From: Adineta vaga
Lineage: Eukaryota > Animalia > Rotifera
Direction: 5' to 3'
Length of the DNA: 64,000 bases
Assembly (NCBI GenBank): GCA_021613535.1
Contig: CP075493.1
Location: forward strand, 15,190,001-15,254,000
Both the position numbers and the translations under genes were made by a program. The notes beneath the pieces are model-generated. The model made no database searches, had not been told where the DNA came from, and saw nothing but the letters and a program-made list of their open reading frames with translations. Position 1 is the stretch's first letter. Every line of letters starts with the position of its first letter. Below, piece by piece: positions 3 to 50,900 of the stretch.

Positions 3-3000
3 GTTCAATATTTTGTAAGTCATGTGTTTAATGGTAAAGAACGACAAATCGCTGATCAATTATTGTCTACTCATCGCGTTTGTTACACTCTATTGAAATG
101 TAATCGTTGTCTCGATTGGCGCGAAATATATGATGGAAAAATCGACTGTACAATCGATGGAATAGACGAAGAGAATTGTTTATCTTTAGAAATGAATGAA
201 TGTAATGAGAATGAATATCGATGTCATAATGGATTATGTATCCCTAAAGATTTTCTCGATGATTACTCATTTAGTCCAGATTGTTTAGATGGCGCTGATG
301 AATATATACCAAACCAAATGAGCAATACACTTTCTACTTATCCTGGTTGCTATCGAGATCCATCATTTCGATGTGAAGAATCTCATCATCCTCTACGATT
401 GAAAAGTTTTCCTTGTGGTGACGGTGAAACATTATTTACATTTGCATCATGTGCCAATGGTCGTCATTTTCTCGAATTTGAAATACTTTACTCTTTCGAC
501 CAAAATAATGCTCTATCATTCAATTGTTGGCTTTTATTATATTGTGCTACTGCATTTGATCGCCAATTTGATCAATGTAAAACAATTTGTAAATCTTACG
601 AATGTAGTTATAATTTATCTGAACAATGTCATTCAACATATATTTTCTTTCCACAAACTGCGATTCTTCATAATCATATTCGATTTGCTTATGCAACAAA
701 TGAAACTATACGAAGAAAACGTTATCAACGAGCATTATTACCTCATTTTGTTTGTTATGAGTTTCAACGATGTCCGTTTTTAATACCGACATTATTCATC
801 AATGGTTTACCTTGTCAACGTACTTTAGAATTAAATATTAAACAATATTATGAAATTGATCAATACTTTCGAGCATGTATAAATGAATATAAAACCAAAA
901 AATCTACTCTTATTCAATGTTCAAATACAGGAAAATTTATTTCAAAATATCGTCTTTTAGATGGAATCATTGATTGTTATAATGCGACTGATGAAAATGG
1001 TATCGATGGATGTTCGTTAAATGATCCATATCGATTTGTATGTTCATCCGAAAAGAAGTGTATTTCACGTGTTGCTAAATATGATTCTGTACCAGATTGT
1101 TTCAAAGATGAAGATGAAAGGCGTTACAAAAAAATCAGATTTTCCTTTCAAGAATTATGTAATGGATTTACACATATGAATAGAGAAATTATCGATAATC
1201 AAACGGAAACAGATGAAACGAATTGTGACGAATGGCCATGTGATAATCTCTACACACGTTGTGATAAAGCCTGGTCTTGTTTAAATGGAGCTGATGAATC
1301 AAAATGTACGGCTTTACAGTGTTCTCCTACAGATGATACCATACCATGTATTTCGCCATATAATTTTACTGAATTTTGTTTACCGATTTCTCGTGCGAAT
1401 GATGGAATCATCGATTGTCTTGGTTCAAGTGATGAACGATCATATTGTCGATCGAAATATGAAGGACAACTTCTCAATCCATACCGATGTTGGAATGATT
1501 CGAAGTGTATTCAAGCTGAAGTTATATGTTTAAAAGGATTTTGTCCTTTTGAAGATCTTTCAAATCAATGTAAAGAAAATCATTTGGATTATCTTATATT
1601 AAGTATGAAAAAAGATTATCATCGATCGCAATTTCCATATGAAAAATTTTTCTTTCTCGAAGATCAAAATATATCATTACGATCGTTCGAACAAAAATTT
1701 CCGATAGAGGAAATCGTTTCTGATTCTTATCTGATACAATTTGACCATTGGAAATGTAATCGTGGTATACCAGTTGAAATGAATAATACTTATCGTTGTT
1801 TTTGTCCACCAAGTTATTATGGAAATCAATGTCAATTTCAAAGTCAACGCGTTAGTTTAACTTTACAAATACGAAAAATCTGTGCACCAAGTTGTCATGG
1901 TGTGTTTCAACTTCTATTAACTTTATTTGATAATAAACAAATGATACATTCTCAAGAACAATTAACCTATCATACAACCACAGATTGTAAAAGAAAACTC
2001 AATAGTTATTTACTATACAATCAGCGAGCAAAAGATTTGAAGAAAAATTATAGTATTCGTATCGATGTCTATAATAAAATAAGTATATCTTATTATGCTT
2101 CTTGGTTCTACTCAATTCCATTTCAATTTCTTCCAGTAAATCGAATTGCAATGCTATTGATCATACCAGCAACTCCGATGATTTATTCTAAATGTTCAAA
2201 ATCATGTATTCATGGACATTGTTCTTTGTATGTGAACACTCTCGAACAAGTATGTATTTGTGAATCTGGCTGGTCAGGTGAAGAATGTAATATTCCACTA
2301 AATGTCGATGTTCATCTCATTCATTATGTCTTGGTGTAATTAATAATAGATCAACTTGTTTATGTCCATTAAATGAAACAGGACCACGATGTCTTCTACC
2401 TTCCATATGTCAAAAAGTATCATGTCCTGATAAAAATGAAATTTGTATTCCCCTTGATAGGCCTGATAACAGATACATATGTTACTGTTGGGCAAGATTT
2501 CCAGGAGATTATTGCGAGAAAACTTTTCGAATGGAAGTTTCCTTTTCAAAATTAGCAATTCCACAAATATTTTTAGCTCATATCATTGAGGCTAAGAGTG
2601 ATAGCGAAATTTCAAGTAAAACAACATCGATTAGAATACGACAAGATCAAGATGAAGGAATGATTATTATACAAAAATATCTTTTTAATCTTTTATTTAT
2701 TCAAATACATGATCAATATTATTTAGCTATGAAATCAAACCGTCAATTATTATCGGGAACAAAACTAATTCTTGATCCGTCTTATCATTGTCCACATATT
2801 CGAGAATTACTCGATACAAGATTGATTCCATATCCGCTTCTTCGTCGTGCGAAATTTTACCATCGAATTTGTCGACAACGATTAGATTTACATTGTTTTC
2901 ATGATCAAGAAGAATTGTTATGTCTGTGTACAAAAGAACGACATGCGAATTGTTTGAATTTTGATTTTAATTTAACGTACAATTGTGATGGATTAAGTGA

Positions 3001-4072
3001 TTGTCAAAATAATGCAAAATGTTTTCAAGATTCTGATCTATGTCCAAATTGGATTCTATGTGAATGTTCCGAATGTTTCTATGGTAGTAAATGTCAATTT
3101 ACAACGAAAGGTTTTGGTCTATCACTTGATGCGATACTTGGATATAGTATTCGACCACATCTTTCTCTTCATCGTCAATTTAATATTATCAAAATTAGTA
3201 TAATTATAACAATGTTGATGTTTATCGTAGGATTGATTAATGGAATTTTATCGATAATGACTTTTCGGTTGAAAAAATTTCAAGAAGTAGGCTGTGGATA
3301 TTATTTATTAATATTATCGATAATTTCATTATTAATTACAATTATATTTACTTGGAAATTTAGTATTTTTCTTCTTTCACAAATGTTAGTTATCAAGAAT
3401 CGAAGTTTGCTTCATTTGAATTGTATTTTGGTTGATTTTATTCTTCGATCATTACTTATAACCAGTGATTGGTTCAATGCAGTTATTTCATGTGAACGAG
3501 CTATAACAGCAATTCAAGGAGTGAAATTTAACAAAAGAAAAAGTTGTCTGATAGCTCGATCTATGATCATTCCTCTCATTGTTATTGTCTTTGTTAGTAC
3601 AATACATGATCCAATCTATCGACAATTAATTGATGATGAAGAAGATAAACGAATTTGGTGTTTTGTTCAATATTCATCGTCTCAATTGGAATTATTAAGT
3701 TTATCAATAAATATTTTTCATTTTATTTTACCTTTTCTAATCAATATTCTTTCAGCTTTGATGATTATTATTAGTACAGCAAAACAACGTGCATCAGCTC
3801 AAAAACAACGAAGTTATCGTCAACATCTTCGTGAACAATGGCGTCATCATAATCATCTCATTTTCAGTTCGATTATTCTCGTTATTTTAGCAATTCCACG
3901 ATTGATTATTTCATTTCTTACTGGTTGTATGAAATCACCTCGTCAACCAGAAGTCTTTTTAGTCGGTTATTTCATCTCATTAGTTTCATCTCTTCTTTCT
4001 TTTATCATTTATATTTTACCTTCACAGACTTATAAAAAAGAATTTATTAAAATAATGAGAACATGGATATGA
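3..4072 (+). CDS. LDLa-repeat/EGF-ectodomain 7TM GPCR, 5' end outside the window; single frameshift at ~2300
   Basis: Frame is open from base 3. Multiple LDLa motifs (CDG..DC..G.DE) and EGF motifs (CFCPPSYYGNQC). After ...CNIPL at 2300 the shifted frame reads KCRCSSHSLCLG...DYCEKTFRMEV directly into ORF 2531..4072, which has hydrophobic TM segments, SCERAI in place of DRY, and YILPSQTYKKEF at TM7/helix 8. Confidence 0.85.
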
Positions 4073-5292: not shown

Positions 5293-7902
5293 ATGTCATT
5301 ATTACGAAGTAATCGTTATGTAAATAAAAATATCTCAGAACTTCAAGATGCCAATCGTAGTCCAATCCATGGCTATAAAAATCAAATGTTAATGACATTA
5401 GAAGAATCGGTTGAAAAACTTCTTCCATTTGTCAATGATATAGTGAAATATGTTGATGATGCTAAACAAAAATGTAATCGAGAACTTAATTTATTAACAT
5501 GGGATGAATCAGCTGCGATTTATCTCTATACAATGTCAACACCGTTCTTTTCTTCGCTTAATGATACACTTCGAGCTGAAAATCGTTATGCATTAAAACC
5601 ATGGTTTCCTTTTTTAAAATTATTTTTAAATGCCTTAGAAAAATTACCATCATCGACGACAACAGTCTGGAGAGCTGTGTCAGGTGATACGGATAATTAT
5701 TCATTGAAAGATGATATTAAAATTTGGTGGAGTATCAATTCTTCTTCAACAGCACTTAATGTTGTTCAAATTTATTTGGGTGAAAGAGGAACTTTGTTTG
5801 CTATTGAAACGATTCGCGGAAAAAGAATTGACGAATATTCAGCTTTTCCAGATGAACAAGAAGTTATTATTATGCCAGGAACATTTTTAAAAATTGAAAG
5901 TGAACCATTGAATTTTATTGATCTTCTTTTAGTTGTTCACTTGAAAGAAGAATCAATTATTCATCAAAATCATGAAAAGTAAGTTATATCTTAAGAATTG
6001 ATATGAATTCGGATTCTTTTTTTTGTTTAGTGTAAATTTAAATCTTTCGTCAAGTACAAATTCTTTATTAAATGATTTTTCTATTGATAATATGAATATC
6101 GATGATCGTTCAAGACTTCTTTTATCAGAAAATGTTCGGAATATGCGTAGTTTTTCAACACTTTCAAAATGTTCGATGATCATTTCAATAATATTTACAA
6201 TATTATTACCAGGAACAACTTTTGCTTTTTTGATAAAAACATTATTTTTCTCATCATCATATACGCATTCGTCGGATCCCTTTCAAGTATATACAACATC
6301 TACTAGAAGTACAACAACAGATTTATTAGATGGGGTTATTTCAACTAGTAAGTTTTCTTATAATTTTGAATTGAAATCATCGAATAGTAACTTCATTGAA
6401 TTTAGCTTGTTCTCATCGTCAATTTCATATCGAAGCTAATATTCTTTATTCATTTGATTGTTCAAGTTTTACTGATGAAATTGAAGGAAAATACAATGGA
6501 ATTTTAACACAAGATTTTTGGATAACATATTCTGTACGTATTTCATTTGACAATACAAATATCATAGAAGAAAAAAAAGAATATCTTCTAGGAGAAATTA
6601 AAAGGAGTAGTTTATATCTCTCCAGATTATTCTGGTAAAGGTTCCGCAATCAAATTTAATTCTAATACGAGTCAATCTATTCAATTAACTCGTTCGCCAA
6701 ACTTATTTAATCAATCGTTTACAATCAGTTTTTGGATCAATCCAAATATTGAAAATTCATCAATTTATGGTTTATTCAATCAGATTTACGTTACTGCACC
6801 TTCGTTTAATATTTCAATAATTGAAGAATATATTGTCACGAATATTTATGGTTCATCATTATGGTCAACAAAGAAATTAGAAAAAAATCGATGGCAATAT
6901 TTATCATTGATATTTAACAAAAAGAACTTATCAATGAGTATTTATATTGATGGAATTTTCAATACAGAAAGTTTGCTTGGACATCATTCGTATGGAAATT
7001 TTGAAATAACAAAAACAACGTGCGGAAGTCTTAATACAATGAATACATTTCATGGTTTAATTGATCAATTATCGATTTTATTCGAAGTTAAAAATCCGAT
7101 TGATATACTTAATGAAGCAACACTTGTTTTTCATTATAATTTTCAAGATAATAATAATGATAATGATTTTCTTTTTAAAGATTCAAGTGTTAATTCCATA
7201 CATGCACAAGGTTCATATGTATCTCATTTAATTGATAAATCAAATCATTATAGTTTATCATTATATAATTCAATGTTATCTTATTTTCAAACCGAAAATT
7301 TTCTTTCAACATTTGATTATTCATATTCATTATGGATTCATATATCAAATCAATCATCTTCGATTATATCAGTTTTACATTTAGTGACGAAATCATCAAG
7401 TAAAAATAGTACAAAAAAATGTTTAAATCATCTGATTTTCAATCAAACAGGTTTATTATTAATAGAATCAAATTTTGTAGAATCGATTTTTCTTGTTTTA
7501 GGAGATAATAAATTACAATTATCAATGTATATTTATGAGTTGAATGAAACAATTATTTTGAAATCAAATATATCAATTGATTATTCTACATGGTTTCATT
7601 TTGTATTTATATCAGGAATGAATAATTTCTCACTTTATATCAATGGTAATCTTGTTAATTTATTGAATCGAACAAATTTATTCAAAATAAATAATCAACA
7701 ACGTTTTACTTTAACTATTGGAAATCCTCAACATCAATTATCGAATAATTATCTATGTTATTTTAATCAAACGTTTATTACATCACAACAAACTGTCATT
7801 GGAATTGATGATCTAAGATTTTATTCACGACAATTAAAATATCAAGAAATTCAAGCACTCTATAAAAATGATCTCGATCCAACGAAATTCTTCTTTGATT
7901 AA
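5293..7902 (+). CDS. Mono-ADP-ribosyltransferase-TM-2x LamG/pentraxin fusion, 4 exons, 813 aa
   Basis: Exons 5293-5978, 6031-6347, 6406-6533 and 6592-7902 join in frame across GT-AG introns (2442 nt). ART motifs VWR, WWSINSSS and DEQEV; TM IISIIFTILLPGTTFAFLI; Ser/Thr stalk; LamG motifs FTISFWI, WQYL..., IYIDG, IDDLRFYSR. Confidence 0.8.
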
Positions 7903-28804: not shown

Positions 28805-31800
28805 ATGGATCTTGATGTTCTTCCTATGAAAACAACACAAAAGCGACGCACCGACGATTGTTTGATTGTTTATTTGGATATATTCATAAATGAAGTCAAT
28901 TTAACTCAACTTTCTCAATTTAGTCTTGCGGTGAAATCATTTACTGATCCAAATGAATGTACGAATTTTATTACGCTTTTAGAGAATAAAAAGGTTTTCT
29001 GCCTTACAGTGGACTATTTCATGGATGATACCATTATCTTTCTGAATCATTCACCATTAGTCGCATTTATTTATATTATGAGTATAAATGACCTCATACA
29101 TGAGTTTTGGACAAACGATTATCCAAAAGTCAAAGGTATATATGGAACTATACACTCAGTCGTTGATGCATTAAAACGAGATATCTCATTATTTTATCGA
29201 AATACCGCTCTAGTCACTGTTATTCCTTCTGCTTTATCGTCACAATCATTAAATACTTTAGACGCAATGTTTATGTATTGTGAACTTTTGAAAGAAACAT
29301 TTCTTGAAATGAACTACGATGAGAGAGCTAAAAGTGCATTGGTTGATCTTTGTAAACGCGAATATGCTGATAGTGCGACTGCTTTACGTACAATCGATGA
29401 GTTTAATCAATATTATGAGAACCGTTCACCAACTTGGTGGTACACTCGAGACTGTTTTGTCTATCGGATGCTTAATAAAGCCTTACGAACATATGACATC
29501 GAACTTATTAATAAATTTGGCTTTTTTATCAAAGATCTTCATTATCAATTACAAAAATTTAGTTATACTTTACCATCGGAAAAATTTATTCTTTACCGAG
29601 GACAAGGGTAATGCAAATATTTTACGAGGAATTTAAATAATTTGTTTGTCGTGTAGTATGTCGATTGAAGAATTTGATAAATTGAAGAAAAATGTAGGTG
29701 GTCTTATTGCCTTCAATAGTTTCTTATCTACGAGTAGTGACAAGAATCTATCAATGAGTTATGCTTTATCTTCTCTCGACGGGATAAACATGAAGGCTAT
29801 TCTCTTCGTCATTCATGTCGATCAAACGCTAACTCCAAATGTTCTTGCGTATTTGAATGAAAATTTAAGTTATTTTCCTAATGAACAAGAATATTTGTGG
29901 GACATGAACACTGTCTTTCGAATTGGTAGAATTTTCGAAGAAGAAAATAACGTATGTCAAGTAAATCTGATGGTAACAAGTGACGATGATCTTCAATTAA
30001 GACATTTGATGGAATTTATGAGAAAAGAATCAAGGACATTATCAGGAATGCAACGATTAGGAAATCTTATGATTGACATGGGAGAATGGACCAAAGCGAA
30101 GGATCTTTATGAAACAATTTTGCGTGGAGAAGAAGGAGAAAATCTTTGTGTTATTCAACAATTAGGTTTCATCGCACATCAGATGAATGATTTAGATAAA
30201 GCACTTGAATATTATCAACAATCTCTTTCTATTATTCTCGTGACTACTCAATCGCCGAACGATCCTCGACTCGCTACTCTCTATTCTAATATTGGTTGTA
30301 TTCTTAAAGACCAAGGTCATTTCAAAGATGCAAATAAACAATTTCAACGTGCATTAGAAATTGAATTCAGCACAAATATTCCTAATCGAGAGAATATTGT
30401 AGGTAGCTCAATTGAATTTATTCATAATTTGTCTTTAACTTATCGTTTAAGGCTAGAACACGTAATAATATTGCAATTTTACTCGAACAACAAGGTCGTC
30501 GTAAAAAAGCACTTAAAAATATGAAATCGACTTTAGAAACACTTCGTGAACGTTTACCTCCAATGCATCCAGAGATTGCTGCTTCATACAATAATATTGG
30601 GACTTTGTATTACGAAATGGAAGATTATTCAAATGCTCTTCTTAATTATGAAATATGTCATGATATTCAAAAGGCATCTTTACCTCCACAACATCCTGAT
30701 CTCGTCCGTACAAATTTATACATGAAAAGAACTATGGCTATTATGCAACAACGAGAGAAAACATCGATAAAGGTAAAGAAATATCTGTTTCTGATATAGT
30801 TCTTCAAACGATTTTTGCTGTTTACTTAGCCTCTTCGATACATTGGAAGCTGCTGTCTTATTGTCGTTCTCGTGATCATCATTGGATTATTTCTATTTCT
30901 CTCAACTTCGATGAATAGAAAGATTATTCAAGTCTCAAAAAGCTCAACAATTTCTTCGCTACAAGCAACAAAATCGACGAGCAAGCTCAAATCAAATACT
31001 TGGATACAAGTAGGAAATATGTCCACTGATCGACAGCAGCATATTGCTATGTACATGCCTACGGACAATTCTGTTATGATTGTGGGAGGTTCTGATTCCT
31101 ATGGAACATTCTTAAAGAGAATGGAAAAATTCTTTTTGTCCTGCAATTGTTTTGAGAAATTTGGTCGTGACTTTTCGATCGATGGTATAGTGAAAGGTGC
31201 CGTACTTCTTCACACTGGCAATATCGTTCTTATTAATACGTCTCCAGCTAAAATTATCTTAATAGATCCAATTAATGGTACAATTGTTTCATCTTTGTCC
31301 CCATTTAGAGCAGCCAATGATACTTTTATTCCTATGTTTCTACCGGTTTCGGGTCATATACTATTAACCAATGGTAGACGTAATAATGTGAAGAGCGACA
31401 TATCTCCATATCAACTGTATGATCCTTTGTCGTTAACAATTAGCGACGTGAAAGGAGGTATAATTGCGGGAAGTGAAGATTATAGCATTTCATACATCGA
31501 TACTGTCAATCAAGTTCTTGTCACTGGAGGACGGGATACGATGATTATAGCTAATAATGCGAGGGAATTAGCTGATCTATATGATGTTGATACTAACACG
31601 GTGTCCCCTCTTGCTTCAAGAATGAACTTACCACGAGTATGGCATACATCCACCTTCATACCAACATTGAATCAGGTATTGCTTTGCGGTGGTTGCATTA
31701 GTCTGTACGCAGTAACAGGTAAATGTGAACTGTCAACTAATATTTGTGAACTATATAATCCGACTACATACAAATTTACTGTACTTCCACATACAATGGT

Positions 31801-32125
31801 CATGAATCGTTACAAACACTCAGCTGTGTATTTACCCTGGCTAGATATGGTGCTTATTGCTGGAGGAGAACGTATATTACCTGGTGGATTTACTATGAAT
31901 CAACCGTTTTTGAAGACTACAGAGTTATTTGACGCTAATTCTTTAACTTTCGTTACAGCAACCGATATGATGATACCACGTGCTTCATTTACTCTTACTC
32001 TAATGTCATCATCTGATCGTGTGCTTGCTTGTGGTGGAAACTACTATAAAATACAAATGACGACGATGACGCCATCAGACTACTGGTTAGCAACATCAAC
32101 TTGTGAAATATTTATACCATCTTGA
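28805..32125 (+). CDS. ADP-ribosyltransferase-TPR-TM-Kelch propeller fusion, 4 exons, 1053 aa
   Basis: Exons 28805-29607, 29657-30398, 30452-30772 and 30830-32125 splice in frame (3162 nt). Motifs LYRGQ, FLSTS and NEQEYL; TPRs; TM IGSCCLIVVLVIIIGLFLFL; Kelch repeats (R..H......VL..GG). Confidence 0.8.
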
Positions 32126-35269: not shown

Positions 35270-36579
35270 ATGCAAAGGAAAATGTCTAACAATAGTAATG
35301 AAACTGTAGATTACGAAGATGTTCGTTTCTTTACATTAGAAACTCCGTTTAGTAGAGCTTTAAACTTCAGTATGTTAATCACTTGTTTAATTCCTGCAAT
35401 GATCTGTAGTCTGGTAATCTTTTATTATTTTATTCGATTAAGAAATCTACGGGAAAAGCAACAACATCATGTGTAAGTAAAACTTTTAATTATTTTATTC
35501 GATTAAGAAATCTACGGGAAAAGCAACAACATCATGTGTAAGTAAAACTTTTAATTATTTTCTTATATTTAAATAAATATAAGTTGTGTAAGATATTAAA
35601 TGATTTAAACATGTTAAATATGAAAGATGTAATCAAATAAATATATTGAAAAGAAAATATCCTTTTATCTAATTTCAACGATAATTAATTATTTTATGGT
35701 ATGCTATTTCTTAAAATGAATTAAAATAAGTAATCTATACTTTCGATATGTGACAATATTAGAAAAATATTATCTTGAAATAATCTAAGTGAAATTTGTA
35801 GGAATTAATAATATTTATATGTTCAAAAGAATAAATTTTGTTTTAGTGTAATTTTTTTATTGATTATCAATTTCATTATTATGACAACTGAATTACCAAT
35901 GACTCTTATACATCTTCATTATGGTCAACTTATTCCAGCGTCTTATTCTCTTTGTATTTACTGGATATTTTTTTGTAATTCTCTTTTTTCAGTGAGTTTT
36001 TGGATAATGACAGCTGCATCAATCCAACGATATATTCTTATCTTTCATCGAAATCTTATGAATACACATTTTAAACATTACGCTCCTTTTATTTTATTAC
36101 CTGGACTTGTTTTTATATGGTATATCGTTCTTGTTCTATTTTATCCATGTGAACAACAGTTTGATTACACTCAAGGTTGGTGTGGGGGTGCATGTTATAT
36201 ATATATAGGAATAATTGGCACTGTTGATTGGATTATAAATTCATTTATACCTATTATAATCGTAGTTATTTTTAACATTCTTCTTATTATACGAGTAGTT
36301 TATCAAAAATATAAGATGCAACGTGCTCATACTTGGCGCACTACTCGCAAACTGACAATTCAACTTTTGTCAATTTCTTTTCTTTATCTGTCAATTTATT
36401 TGCCTACAATAATCTTTGCATTGATTCGACTTTGGATTGATCCATTCTTTCTTTTTGTTTTTACTTCAGTCTACTTTCTTTATTTTGGTTACTATCCAAC
36501 ACTGTTTATGCCATTTTTATGTTTAATTAGTTTAAAAGAAATTAGAACAGAGGTAAAGAAATTATGCTTTTGTACATAA
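35270..36579 (+). CDS. Rhodopsin-class GPCR, 2 exons
   Basis: TM1 in the exon ending at 35472; intron 35473-35846; in-frame exon 2 with AASIQRY and CLISLKEIR; resembles the 10145 receptor. Confidence 0.85.
35424..35561 (+). repeat. 65-bp exact tandem duplication spanning the GPCR splice donor
   Basis: Unit ATTATTTTATTCGATTAAG...GTGTAAGTAAAACTTTTA starts at 35424 and 35489; ATTATTTT microhomology recurs at 35554. Confidence 0.9.
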
Positions 36580-39912: not shown

Positions 39913-40675
39913 TAAGATGAAGATGTAAAAGCCATATTGATGAACACTTTACCTTAGTAATGCGTAATAAGTATACTTACATGGGACTACAATGATTGCA
40001 AGTATAATGTTACGAAACAATACGCAAATATATTTGTAATTGTATTTATACTGATATAGCCGAACAGCTATTGAATATCTCTAGACAATATTATGGCGAT
40101 AAATCATTTTCTCACACTCTGACATAAACATCGCTGGGATTTCTTCCAGGTTTTAAGCAGTTATTTGCATGAGATATATCCAATCAACCTTTGACAACAA
40201 CAATAGAATGTTAGTGTACGTGTCATTGACGAAGGGAAAAAAACCTTCAAACAAAGAAGTAAAAGAAAGCAAAAGAGCAATTGTGACTTCATAAAATATA
40301 CCTCTTATCGTATTACCAGTAGAGAAGAAGAAGAGAACTATCAATATCTTATGAGTGAAACGAAAAGTATAGATTTGATTGTATTGAATACGAGATATTT
40401 ACATACACACTATGAAAATAGTTCGTACTTTTATTTTTTTCTTATTACAAAAAGAAATGTGTATTGTCATCTTGAATTCCACTCATTACGACTACTACAT
40501 CGAAATTAAAATTGAAATAATTTCGAGTACCATTGATTCAGAATCATCAAACTTTTTAGAGATTGGGTACTTTTGTTTTCTACCGAATGAAAAAGATAAT
40601 TATCTTCACCTTATCTCAAGGTATATATCTATACCACTGCTATTCTTTAGAGAAAGACAAATATATTTTGAAGTG

Positions 40676-42457
40676 ATGTATAAAAAATTGTTTTATATAT
40701 GTTTCATCGTTCTTTTTTTCTGCGATTCAATCAATTCCGTTGTTGTTGTCCCATTAACAGGCGATGATTGGACAATACACAATAATGGCTCCTATTCTGT
40801 TCAAGGTCAAATACCTGGTACTATTCATACAATTCTTCTTGCTGCAAATCAAATTACTGAACCCTATTGGGGTTATGATGATGTTAATCTACGCTATTTA
40901 ATTTACACTTCATGGACATTTAAAAAACGATTTTTCTTAACAGATGATTTTCTCATATTGACACAATTCACACTTCATTTTGATCAGATTGATGCAATTG
41001 CTAAGATAACATTAAATAGATGTTTTATCGGTCAAACAAATAATATGTTTCTCGGCTACACATTTAATGTGATGAAAAGTTGTTTACAATCGAATAATGA
41101 ACTTCAAATTGATTTTGAATCACCAGTGATGTATGCATTAAATCAAGCTCGTGCATATCATGATGATGTACCACCTGATTGTCCACCTGACATTCAATAT
41201 GGTGAATGTCATGTACAATTTATTCGAAAAGAACCTTGCTCATTCAGTTGGGATTGGGCTCCAGCATTTGCTCCAATTGGTATTACTGGTAATCTTTATC
41301 TACAAGGTACAAATAATTCCACCAAATTCATTCTACTCGAAAGTATTAACATTGCATCTTATCAAACATCGATCAATAAATGGCAAGTTGATGTTTTGCT
41401 AAGTAGTACCAATGATCCATTTTTAAGTCAACTGAAATTTGTATTAGAAAATACTTCATTTATATTTGAAACAAATATTACATTTAATCATAACATATCA
41501 ATTTCCTTCTTGATTCCTAATGATATCATTGAACTTTGGTGGCCAAATGGATATGGTAATCAGATTTTGTATAATTTATCTGTTTATAATCAAGAACAAC
41601 GAGTTGGATCACGTTCGATCGGTTTTCGAACAATTGAACTTGCTCAACATGATTATGGACCGAATATAAATGGAACATCGTTCTATTTTATTATTAATAA
41701 TCGTTCAATCTTTATCAAAGGAAGTAATTGGATACCACCAGATGCATTTCAAGAACGTGTAACGGATGAAAGACTTGAACGTTTACTTTATTCAGCAAAA
41801 CTAGCCAATATAAATATGCTACGAATTTGGGGTGGTGGAATCTATGAACGTGATTCATTCTACGAAATGGCGGATCGTTTTGGTATTATGCTATGGCATG
41901 ATTTCATGTTTGCCTGTAGTTTGTAAGTATAGAGTCATATCAATTCATATGTTTTATATTCGTCTATATTGTTAGATATCCAGTTGATGACGAATTTCTA
42001 GTGAATGTTCATGATGAAGTTATTTATCAAGTAAAACGTCTTCAATCACATTCTTCGATTGTTTTATGGTCAGGAAATAATGAAAATGAACAAGCAGTTG
42101 CACTCAATTGGTATCGTTTATCACCAGAAAAAATACCGAAAGCAAAAGACTAATATCGAAAATTATATGTTGATACAATTATGGATGCTGTGAAGAAAGT
42201 TGATAAAGGTAATAATCGACCATTTATAACATCATCACCAACGAATGGATTAGAATCAATCAAAGAAAATTATATTGCCACGAATCCTCAAGATCCACTC
42301 TATGGTAAGTATATCAATTTGAAAGTATTATTAATTGAGAATGAATTGTATAGGTGATGTTCATTTTTATGGTTTTAATAATGATACTTGGAATCCGGCA
42401 ACATATCCTATCACGCGTTTTTTATCCGAAACAGGTATGAATTCATTGCCAAGTCTT
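40676..42457 (+). pseudogene. MANBA: Beta-mannosidase (GH2), premature stop and 3' truncation
   Basis: [50 protein letters not shown] and RFLSETG motifs; TAA at 42151-42153; similarity ends abruptly after SLPSL (~42457). Confidence 0.85.
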
Positions 42458-47983: not shown

Positions 47984-50900
47984 CTAACAATGAAACAAAA
48001 TCCCGACATAGTTTGCACCATTGATTGCATCATTGTTCGCCGTAACTATATCAGGTTTGTTGTCACCATTTATATCGACCACGGCAACTGAGTATGGATA
48101 ATTACCAACTGAGTAACTAATTTTAGAAAAAAAAGTACCATTGCCTTTATTGAGAAAAACACTAACAGTGGGTACACCAGTCTCTCCCGTAATTATATCA
48201 GGTTTGCTGTCATTGTTTACATCCATGACTGCGACTGAAGTTGGATAATTACCAGTTGTATAAGTAATTTGAGAAGAAAACGTACCGTTGCCTATATTAA
48301 AAAGAACACTAACAGTGCCAGACCCATAGTTAGCCGCAATTATATCAGGCTTATTGTCACCATTTATATCGACCACGGCAACTGAACGGGGTCCGGTACC
48401 AATTGAATATGTAAGTTGAGAAGCAAATGTGCCATTCCCAACATTCAGAAGAATACTAACAGTGTTTGCACGATTGTTTGCCGTAATTATGTCAGGCATA
48501 TTGTCATTATTTACATCGACAACTGCAACTGAGTATGAACCGTTGCCAGTTGAGTAATTAATTTGAGAAGAAAAGGTAGCGTTACCTTTATTCAGAAGAA
48601 TACTAACAGTGTTTTCACCATTATTTGCCGTAATTATATCAGGTTGATTGTCACCATTTATATCGATCACAGCAACCGATCGTGGATAAGAACCTGTTGA
48701 GTAACTATTTTGAATAGAAAATATACCATTGCCTGTGTTGAGCAAAACACTAATAGTGTTTACAGCATAGTTTGCCGTAATTATATCAGGCTTGTTATCA
48801 TTGTTTACATCGGCAACCGCAACTGAGTATGAACCGTTGCCAGTTGAGTAATTACTTCGAGAAGAAAAGGTAGCATTGCCTGCATTGAGAAGAATACTAA
48901 CAGTGTTTGCACCATCGTTTGCCGTAACTATATCAAGTTTGTTGTCACTGTTCACATCGATAATCAGTACTGATTGTGGACTGCTTCCTGTTGGGTACAT
49001 AATTTGAGAAGAAAAAGTACCGTTGTTTACATTCAAAAGAACATTAACAGTGGCTGTCCCATAGTTAGCCGTAATTATATCAGGTTGATTGTCACTGTTT
49101 AAATCAACTACGGCAACTGAGGATGGACTGGCGCTAGTTGAATACATAGTTTGAGAAGAAAATGTGCCATTACCTTTATTGAGAAGAATACTGACAGTGC
49201 TCACAGCATAGTTTACCGTAACTATATCAGGTTGATTGTCATTGTTAACATCTTTGACAGCAACTGAATATGGATATTTACCAGTTGAATAAGTAATTTG
49301 AGAAGCAAATGTGCCATTTCCGGTATTCAAAAGAACACTAACAGTACTTGGACCATAGTTGGCCGTAACTATATCAGGCTTATTGTCACCGGTTATATCG
49401 ACCACAGCAACTGAGCGGGGTCCGGTACCAGTTGAGTAAGTAATTGGAGAAGCAAATATACCATTCCCAGTATTAAGAAGAATACTAACAGTATTTGCAC
49501 CATAGTTGGCCGTAATTATATCAGGCTTGCTGTCGTTATTTACATCGACCACGGCAACTGAGTATGGAAGATTACCAGTTGAGTAATTACTTTGAGGAGA
49601 GAATGTACCATTACCGTTATTGAGAAGAATACTGACAGTGCTCACAGCATAGTTTACCGTAACTATATCAGGTTGATTGTCATTGTTAACATCTTTGACA
49701 GCAACTGAGTATGGATAATTACCAATTGAATAAGTAATTTGAGATGCAAATGTGCCGTTCCCGGTATTCAGAAGAATACTAACAGTATTTGCACCATTAT
49801 TCGCCGTAACTATATCAGGCTTATTGTCACCGTTTATATCGACCACAGCAACTGAGCGCGGACTGTGACCAGTTGAGTAAGTAACTTGAGAAGAAAACGT
49901 ACCGTTGCCTATATTTAGAAGAACACTAGTAGTGTTTCCTGTGTAGCTTGCCGTAACTATATCAGGTTTGTTGTCACTGTTCACATCTGCGACAATTATT
50001 GTGAGCGGAGACAAGCCAACTGTGTAACTGGGTCGATTGTAGTACATGTTATTGCATGCTGTCAGAAAAAAATGAAACGGGTTACTTAGAAGTACTACAA
50101 AAATGAGTGCACATCTTCGGAGTCTTCTGTAGTCGAAATTTTTCTAGAATATTTTGTTCTGAACCGAAGAAGGAGATTAGCTAGGATGGATTAGAACAGG
50201 ATATTAAATCAAAGAATGTCGCATATGTTTGGCTATTTGAGTTCTGTGTGTGTGTCAATATGATTAGGCTCCGCATTAGGTGAAAATCGATAATGATCTA
50301 CAAGAGTCTAGTAGTTTTGGGCTGCAGTTTATGCTCAGTAAACTCATTGCTCTTGTGTAATCATTTCTATGGTGTGAATATATTGTGTAAAACAATCCGC
50401 TTGACTTCTATTACAGTTGAAATAGCAAAAATATGGCGTCATATTCTTAGTTTACATTCAAAGTAGCTAGCATTGGCACAAGTAATATTAGGCGAAGGAT
50501 ATACTGAAAAGAAATTGGATGTTTTACCAAACTTCTTAAAGTTCAGCAAGTTCTAAAAGCTTCGGCCTCGTGAGATACTTTTTCGAAAACTACCAACATG
50601 GGAGGAGTCTTTTTCTTCGAGATTTTCATAGATTTCTGCAAAAATTGAATAAACTATCGAATTTATTACAAAGATCGCAAGTGTCTTACGTACCATCAGG
50701 TATTGGAGTTGTCGAGGTTGTTGTCGTAGTTGTTGTTGAGATCGGTGTTGAGGTTGTTGTTGATGTAGTGGTGGGTTCTATGTTTTGTGAAAAAAATAAA
50801 CACAGAAATGAAAGAATAGAATCGACAAGCTTTGATTAGAATATTTTTCTATCTACCAAGAATACATCTAGCTCTTAAGGATTTATGATAATTTGTAAGC

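Follow-up and report, generated by a model that had tools for sequence, protein, structure and literature searches.

A predicted single-pass membrane protein with ADP-ribosyltransferase, TPR and Kelch domains in Adineta vaga, and an orthogroup that carries different heads

Several described systems share parts with the gene reported here, which lies at positions 28805-32125 on the forward strand of a 64,000-nt window of the genome of the bdelloid rotifer Adineta vaga (assembly GCA_021613535.1, contig CP075493.1, positions 15,190,001 to 15,254,000; the window is this whole stretch, and coordinates given without a contig name are counted from its first letter). In the vertebrate ecto-ADP-ribosyltransferases (ARTC1-5, PF01129), which are either glycosylphosphatidylinositol-anchored or secreted, a signal peptide directs the catalytic domain to the outside of the cell. 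They have in common with the A. vaga gene the R-S-ExE signature, the Pfam clan of the ADP-ribosyltransferase (ART) domain and an association with the membrane. In contrast to them, the A. vaga protein has no signal peptide, its ART domain is N-terminal to an internal transmembrane (TM) helix, and TPRs and a propeller are added. The bacterial C2/C3-like exoenzymes (PF03496) are secreted toxins. They give the best Pfam match to the C-terminal half of the ART domain and have the same S-T-S and ExE motifs, whereas the gene in the window belongs to an animal, contains introns and has an N-domain of its own, TPRs, a TM helix and a Kelch domain. Closer to hand are the soluble ART-TPR paralogs of bdelloids, such as the one at 19750-22902, which share the N-domain, the R-S-ExE ART and the KLC-type TPR_12 repeats with the window gene; most of these consist of one open frame of ~600-1400 aa, with a long TPR array and with neither a TM helix nor a C-terminal head domain. 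The membrane-anchored A. vaga Kelch protein UJR06988.1 has the same layout of TM helix, stalk and Kelch domain, but it lacks the ART-TPR part and has only a tiny cytosolic portion.

Receptor kinases, guanylyl cyclases and tyrosine phosphatases combine an outer binding domain, one TM segment and a cytosolic enzyme, and their ectodomains are shuffled. The likeness to the window gene is in the way of working only: the catalytic domain is unrelated, the orientation would be N-in/C-out, the opposite of that in most receptor kinases, and signalling by ADP-ribosylation is our suggestion for the window gene. To our knowledge, animal receptor enzymes couple the outer domain to a kinase, a phosphatase or a cyclase, and we know of none with an R-S-E ADP-ribosyltransferase. 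In A. vaga, expansions of the TPR, Kelch, NHL, LRR and FG-GAP families have been documented (PMC3846280). Our literature searches found no description of the ART-TPR-TM-head architecture, and ART-TPR-TM proteins with swapped heads look like an undescribed kind of surface receptor. We read the locus as one functional four-exon A. vaga gene for a single-pass membrane protein that would act as an ADP-ribosylation-signalling receptor, and we put the probability of this reading at about 0.6. We are highly confident in the gene model and in the existence of the modular orthogroup to which the gene belongs. What is new here is that cross-species orthogroup and the conserved phase-1 intron at which the heads are swapped.

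The four exons, read from the DNA and checked by script, sum to 3162 nt, corresponding to 1053 codons and a stop. Exon 1 (28805-29607) holds the start codon, a family-specific N-domain and the N-terminal half of the ART domain. Intron 1 (29608-29656, 49 nt, phase 2) cuts the ART domain between its Arg and Ser motifs, and exon 2 (29657-30398) carries the C-terminal half followed by the first TPRs. Intron 2 (30399-30451, 53 nt, phase 0) falls within the TPR array, at the same site as in the orthologous contig L028, and exon 3 (30452-30772) adds two more TPR pairs and a short basic tail. Intron 3 (30773-30829, 57 nt, phase 0) marks the boundary between the TPRs and the TM helix. Exon 4 opens with a short basic lead-in and the single TM helix (30830-30910, with the helix itself at 30842-30910), continues with a Ser/Thr-rich stalk (30911-31000) and ends with the Kelch beta-propeller head (31001-32125, stop codon at 32123-32125), the latter identified by Pfam, AlphaFold2 and Foldseek. 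All three introns run from GT to AG; the window has ~30% G+C and introns of ~50 nt. Coordinates, phases and length are all as given in the preliminary description of this DNA, which had exons joining in frame across three canonical introns into a protein of 1053 aa. The order along the protein is the N-domain, the R-S-ExE ART, ~5 TPRs, one TM helix, the stalk and the Kelch propeller, and the copy in the window runs through its 1053 codons without stops or frame shifts. An in-frame TAG at 30827-30829 shuts the frame directly before exon 4, and within exon 4 there is no ATG ahead of the hydrophobic helix. Exon 4 alone therefore cannot begin a protein that contains the helix. Reading through the donor of exon 3 leads to a stop at 30799.

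Pfam and database searches were made exon by exon, and the ART domain was therefore scored in two pieces. Exon 1 alone has no Pfam match; it aligns at 34% identity with the first 278 residues of the paralog at 19750, in which residues 178-383 match PF01129 alongside the long TPR array. Exon 2 matches the C-terminal half of PF03496 (ADPrib_exo_Tox, profile positions 100-180 of 196) with 25.1 bits against a cutoff of 23.4. TPR_12 is matched with 58.6 bits in exon 2 and with 61.4 bits (9.6e-17) in exon 3, against a cutoff of 30.1 for both. The R-S-ExE signature is complete, with YRGQ closing exon 1 (catalytic Arg codon at 29597-29599) and with NSFLSTS (S-T-S motif at 29727-29735) and NEQEYLW (E-Q-E motif at 29883-29891) in exon 2. 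By profile and motifs the window gene is a member of the R-S-ExE mono-ADP-ribosyltransferases, with enzyme activity predicted. An alignment of the motifs shows YRGQ, NSFLSTS and ExE to be retained in the window gene, in the related loci L073-L077 and in a sister copy on assembly contig C4. The TPR array spans ~225 residues compared to ~600 in the soluble paralog at 19750, which bears out the earlier statement that it has been shortened relative to that paralog.

The only strong hydrophobic segment of the protein is at residues 5-27 of exon 4, with a Kyte-Doolittle 19-residue mean of 3.12 at residues 5-23. The maxima in exons 1, 2 and 3 are 1.67, 1.34 and -0.05, respectively, that of exon 1 being at residue 76. 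By inspection and hydropathy the N-terminus is charged and non-hydrophobic, unlike a signal peptide. The single TM helix is found ~620 residues downstream of the start, after the ART domain and the TPRs, and a hydrophobic helix is present in every relative despite diverged sequence. Its N-side flank is the more basic one in most relatives. AlphaFold2 models of exon 4 together with 16 relatives (pLDDT 81.9, pTM 0.81) place a helix at residues 6-27, disorder at residues 28-54, which corresponds to the stalk, and an all-beta propeller at residues 57-429. The head holds eight cysteines, and the ones inspected visually are shared with the close orthologs. With no hydrophobic N-terminal signal, a basic N-side flank, a stalk and recurring cysteines on the head side, and a signal-anchor paralog of the same layout, we infer an N-in, type II-like topology in which the ART-TPR part is cytosolic and the stalk and propeller are outside. 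An ART that lacks a signal peptide and is N-terminal to an internal TM helix is accordingly predicted to be cytosolic.

Exon 4 matches Kelch_3 (3e-13), Kelch_6 (2.1e-11) and Kelch_1 (1.1e-8) in Pfam. Foldseek assigns a probability of 1.0 to Kelch domains, with the best coverage to propellers of the galactose oxidase type and TMq values of 0.64-0.66 to seven-bladed copper radical oxidases. Seven GG motifs counted in the alignment of relatives suggest that the head is probably seven-bladed.

Relatives in other genomes support the junctions of the gene model. A word search with exon 2 yielded full-length relatives of 51-76% identity, one of them from Rotaria magnacalcarata, and relatives of exons 1 and 2 in other genomes have 50-76% identity. 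A metagenome scan by exon 2 peptide patterns found no relative, and a scan by exon 3 alignment found L028. The most complete ortholog is L073, a 3755-nt contig from a second Adineta-like species. Exons 1, 2 and 3 have 72%, 76% and 83% amino acid identity to it, respectively, its gene order and start are as in the window, and its exon 3 is followed by a TM exon and then by the first 126 residues of the Kelch exon. L028 runs from the last part of exon 2 through an identically placed intron 2 to exon 3, which a ~530-nt intron separates from a TM exon; L027 overlaps its 3' end and adds to the repetition of the TPR-TM-Kelch order. L025 and L026 start with the end of the TPR exon (84% amino acid identity across 68 aligned residues), and in both this is followed by a GT donor at the phase-0 site seen in the window, an intron of ~120 nt, a TM exon, a phase-1 intron and an exon for stalk and Kelch head, all in frame. 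A small F-box-like open reading frame follows the Kelch exon of L026, at 2297-2626 of that locus. Exon 3 has 78-84% amino acid identity to its orthologs, and throughout L073-L078 and the C4 copy, L080, the exon 1 match stops and the exon 2 match starts at the same residues. The phase-0 GT donor of intron 3 is found at all nine related loci inspected, with intron lengths from 57 to ~530 nt. None of the TM exons examined, those of L025, L026 and L028 among them, has a start codon before its helix, as is the case in the window gene. Identical junctions and frames in contigs whose introns differ in length and sequence are more than chance would give. The tails obtained by reading through the exon 3 donor, in contrast, differ in both length and sequence, and in L076 the end of the TPRs and the TM helix lie within one open frame.

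Selection was estimated from ratios of nonsynonymous to synonymous divergence (dN/dS, Nei-Gojobori) between the window gene and the orthologous contigs, for which dS is 0.8-2.5. The ratios are 0.125 for the TPR part of exon 2 (against L028), 0.03-0.08 for exon 3, 0.24-0.42 for the TM helix and 0.34 for the stalk and Kelch head (against L026). By this measure all parts of the gene are under purifying selection.

The orthogroup has members in several bdelloid-like genomes, shares the ART-TPR-TM part and differs in its heads. In a small tree it separates from the three further A. vaga paralogs included (support 84/83), and the window gene pairs with L073 (support 98/98); the inner branches are weak, and we therefore draw no order of events from them. 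Every member has the TM helix after a phase-0 donor (GTx following the last TPR-exon codon), and in every member but the window gene the TM exon ends in a phase-1 donor (N, then GTAAG). L025, L026, L028 and L073 have the phase-1 intron after a homologous ..IQ, which in the window corresponds to a site near 30932. The window gene has thus lost the phase-1 intron, so that TM helix, stalk and Kelch head lie in one exon. Behind this intron, Kelch heads are found in the Adineta-like contigs, and NHL propeller heads in L075, L076 and L078 (Pfam 2.7e-28 and 1.9e-24), where phase-1 acceptors restore the frame. In L077 there is an LRR_6 frame with an acceptor compatible with phase 1. The preliminary description had the TM helix and the Kelch head appended together at the phase-0 intron and proposed a modular system with interchangeable outer modules. 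The phase-0 junction is real, but it is the TPR/TM boundary common to the whole orthogroup. Modularity is upheld in that Kelch, NHL, possibly LRR and another domain stand behind a conserved TM exon, with the correction that heads change at the phase-1 intron.

Two further NHL propeller exons lie close to ART N-domains in A. vaga. One is at C4:9216986-9217909 (-), upstream of the N-domain of the sister copy (C4:9215719-9216312, same strand), and the other at C3:8072903-8073772 (-), upstream of an ART N-domain at C3:8071765-8072553 on the same strand. In both cases the gap is 350-700 nt. These exons could be the last exon of a tandem neighbor or represent an NHL-first arrangement.

A working mechanism can be outlined for the receptor reading. 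The ART-TPR part, having no signal peptide, would remain in the cytosol, with the helix serving as an internal signal anchor. The outward-facing propeller may bind a ligand outside the cell, for which glycans and molecules on microbial surfaces are the likeliest candidates, and binding would alter either clustering or a TPR-mediated autoinhibition. The ART could then mono-ADP-ribosylate cytosolic targets (Arg-directed) or consume NAD+, and the specificity of the receptor would be diversified through swapping of the head exon. We propose this ligand-gated mechanism tentatively, as somewhat less likely to be right than wrong.

Several results weigh against the receptor reading. Four presumed-RNA sequencing runs gave no junction; they yielded two 151-nt contigs in exon 4 and an unrelated TPR fragment, and a run search found that no run recorded as RNA contains the stretch. 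Exon-wise searches of 1.84 billion protein representatives found no fused ART-Kelch protein, and the best match is a 381-aa Kelch-only model. The NHL-type relative L078 has E-N-A at the ExE site and has lost the second catalytic Glu. The C4 copy (L080, C4:9213578-9216967, minus strand) has one frame shift in exon 1, followed by exons 2 and 3, a TM exon with the phase-1 donor and a last exon that belongs to a third type and extends past the edge of the locus. The loss of the Glu in L078 and the frame shift in the C4 copy imply that ART activity is not indispensable in every member. The LRR in L077 is a tentative head, and in the Rotaria locus L074 the 5 kb that follow the TM exon contain no match of the Kelch, NHL or C4 type. 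The density of N-x-S/T sequons is no higher in the head than in the ART-TPR part and is uninformative on topology.

Some details of these loci may be added. The short contigs come from run X1, presumed to be RNA and carrying an organism label that differs from that of the assembly's runs; they are identical to the Kelch exon at 30906-31056 and 31288-31438, have a depth of 2 and are too short to show transcription or splicing. The acceptor at the TM exon of L080 fits phase 0 poorly, and this copy may therefore be decaying. Its ART C-half is 65% identical to that of the window gene. A 116-residue piece of its last exon has no Pfam match, and with Atlas scores below 0.9 a ThuA or GATase1-like identity is a weak lead. 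In L074 (CAJNOV010000484.1, 3893-6626) the public annotation splits the gene, with exon 1 as a separate 268-aa model, and a 348-aa model continues into the intron past the phase-1 donor that closes the TM exon.

The main rival explanation accepts a real fused membrane protein that is not ligand-gated. Here the protein is a membrane-tethered TPR-ART effector in which the TM helix and head serve localization only, by tethering or sorting the effector or as a trafficking lectin, and sensing is done by the TPRs, as it is in other TPR effectors of conflict systems. The soluble ART-TPR paralogs, of which there are hundreds, presumably function in the absence of an ectodomain, and the TPR exons are the most constrained part of the gene (dN/dS 0.03-0.13). 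Heads can be exchanged, and in L078 the head persists although a catalytic Glu is lost. Against this, the heads are ligand-binding propeller types whose families are very large and consist mostly of single-exon members (186 Kelch and 896 NHL first-look candidates in A. vaga), and the nearest Kelch relative is annotated as membrane-anchored. The TPR array, to which sensing would fall, is shorter than in the soluble paralogs, and the repeated exchange of heads downstream of a conserved junction agrees with selection acting on their binding targets. We regard a purely localizing head as unlikely, although it deserves to be taken seriously.

A second alternative is that two adjoining genes have been misjoined, such that the ART-TPR gene stops at 30799, the Kelch gene starts at an ATG or GTG within 30872-31020, and the in-frame junction between them is due to chance. 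This would fit the lack of junction reads in RNA, the Kelch-only models that public gene callers give for orthologs (P0001, P0155, P0156) and the absence of an ART-TPR part upstream of the closest A. vaga Kelch paralog. The models in question are the best public relatives of the Kelch exon, with 58-63% identity, but they are Kelch-only open reading frames on short metagenome contigs, and we attribute them to gene calls in which each exon was called as an open reading frame of its own. The donor, acceptor, phase and start-less helix are conserved across species while the intron varies almost tenfold in length, whereas the read-through tails that would end a separate ART-TPR gene are not conserved, and L076 has the TPR end and the helix in one frame. 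A Kelch protein started at its first ATG would moreover lose a helix that is under selection. We consider the two-gene explanation very improbable.

Still less probable is that the locus is a decaying fusion or pseudogene that arose by recent accidental juxtaposition. The frame shift in exon 1 of the sister copy on chromosome 4 and the lack of detected expression in the runs examined would agree with decay, but the window copy is intact over its full length with all catalytic motifs kept, dN/dS is well below 1 in each part against species with saturated synonymous divergence, and the architecture is older than the split of several bdelloid-like lineages. A reversed topology, with the ART-TPR part extracellular or luminal and the Kelch domain cytosolic, is the least credible alternative. 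In its favor, the R-S-E ARTs of vertebrates act outside the cell, the solved Kelch domains that Foldseek matched belong mostly to cytosolic adaptors, and sequon density favors neither side. Against it, exon 1 reaches a hydropathy of no more than 1.67 and offers no N-terminal signal, the helix flank on the ART-TPR side is the more basic in most relatives, the stalk and recurring cysteines are on the Kelch side, and in the closest Kelch paralog, itself a signal-anchor protein, the Kelch domain is C-terminal.

The window gene can be compared with related families in the genome. Genome searches covered the 100.8-Mb, six-contig A. vaga assembly, in which the window lies on contig C1. The family sizes are lower bounds or rough counts from a first look, and 144 of 651 ART, 97 of 186 Kelch and 125 of 896 NHL candidates were scored. 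The 651 candidates have the exon 1-type N-domain and ART; the 144 that were scored all fall below 1e-28, lie mostly in open frames of 600-1400 aa and reach at most 45% identity to the window gene. For the ART C-half, with 549 first-look candidates, the C4 copy is an outlier at 65% and all others have at most 48% identity. The intronless paralog at 19750-22902 (1050 aa) is likewise distant, being 29-37% identical. With three introns, ~5 TPRs, a TM helix and a head, the window gene does not follow the pattern of the soluble, intronless ART-TPR proteins. The 896 NHL candidates are single-exon propellers, and the Kelch family comprises at least 186 candidates, mostly open frames of ~350 aa that open just before the propeller.

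The nearest relative of the Kelch head in A. vaga is a gene on contig C3 with 43% identity, whose annotated product is UJR06988.1 (P0074). This product has an N-terminal signal anchor, a Ser/Thr linker and a Kelch domain, with only a few residues on the cytosolic side, and there is no ART-TPR within 3 kb upstream of the gene. Among the best 24 of ~79 Kelch loci, none has an ART-TPR directly upstream of the Kelch exon; at one Kelch locus, L053, an ART-TPR lies 5.5 kb upstream and is probably a separate gene. Free-standing LamG and propeller genes of the window had been suggested earlier as donor types. The free-standing propeller gene in the window is of the FG-GAP type, the free-standing LamG gene is at 61768-62658, and the closest relative of the head is on C3; neither of the two window genes donated the Kelch head. 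The head's best non-rotifer matches, with P0051 and P0158 among the hit proteins, are long multi-propeller proteins of 31-39% identity, and some of these lie on large contigs and have the JGI name N-acetylneuraminic acid mutarotase. By these matches the head family looks closer to bacterial-type Kelch proteins than to animal BTB-Kelch proteins.

The window contains a further ART, of another subfamily, at 5293-7902 (PF01129, 1e-11), with a frame containing a hydrophobic helix at 6023-6439 and a Laminin_G_3 frame at 6907-7902; it is the other ART that the preliminary description took to be of receptor type. Pfam matches identify the other neighbors. These are two rhodopsin-type seven-transmembrane receptors (2531-4072 and 35860-36579, +), a protein with a GH2 galactose-binding-like domain (40412-41926, +), the FG-GAP propeller protein with 13 repeats (47984-50047, -), a nicotianamine synthase (53272-54243, +) and the free-standing Laminin_G_3 protein, on the minus strand.

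More broadly, the orthogroup may represent bdelloid 'receptor ARTs', in which a cytosolic ART-TPR-TM chassis has had its heads replaced repeatedly by exon shuffling at one phase-1 intron, from large single-exon families of binding domains, to give a home-grown repertoire for innate recognition. We offer this wider proposal with more reserve than the ligand-gated mechanism. If the topology and gating proposed here are true, these proteins would provide a new way to pass a signal across the membrane. The orthogroup is in addition a natural case of exon shuffling, with one chassis, different heads and one conserved intron phase, across species and sister copies. It also gives constructs with which to probe the role of the huge ART-TPR and propeller families of rotifers, possibly in defense against fungal or other pathogens.

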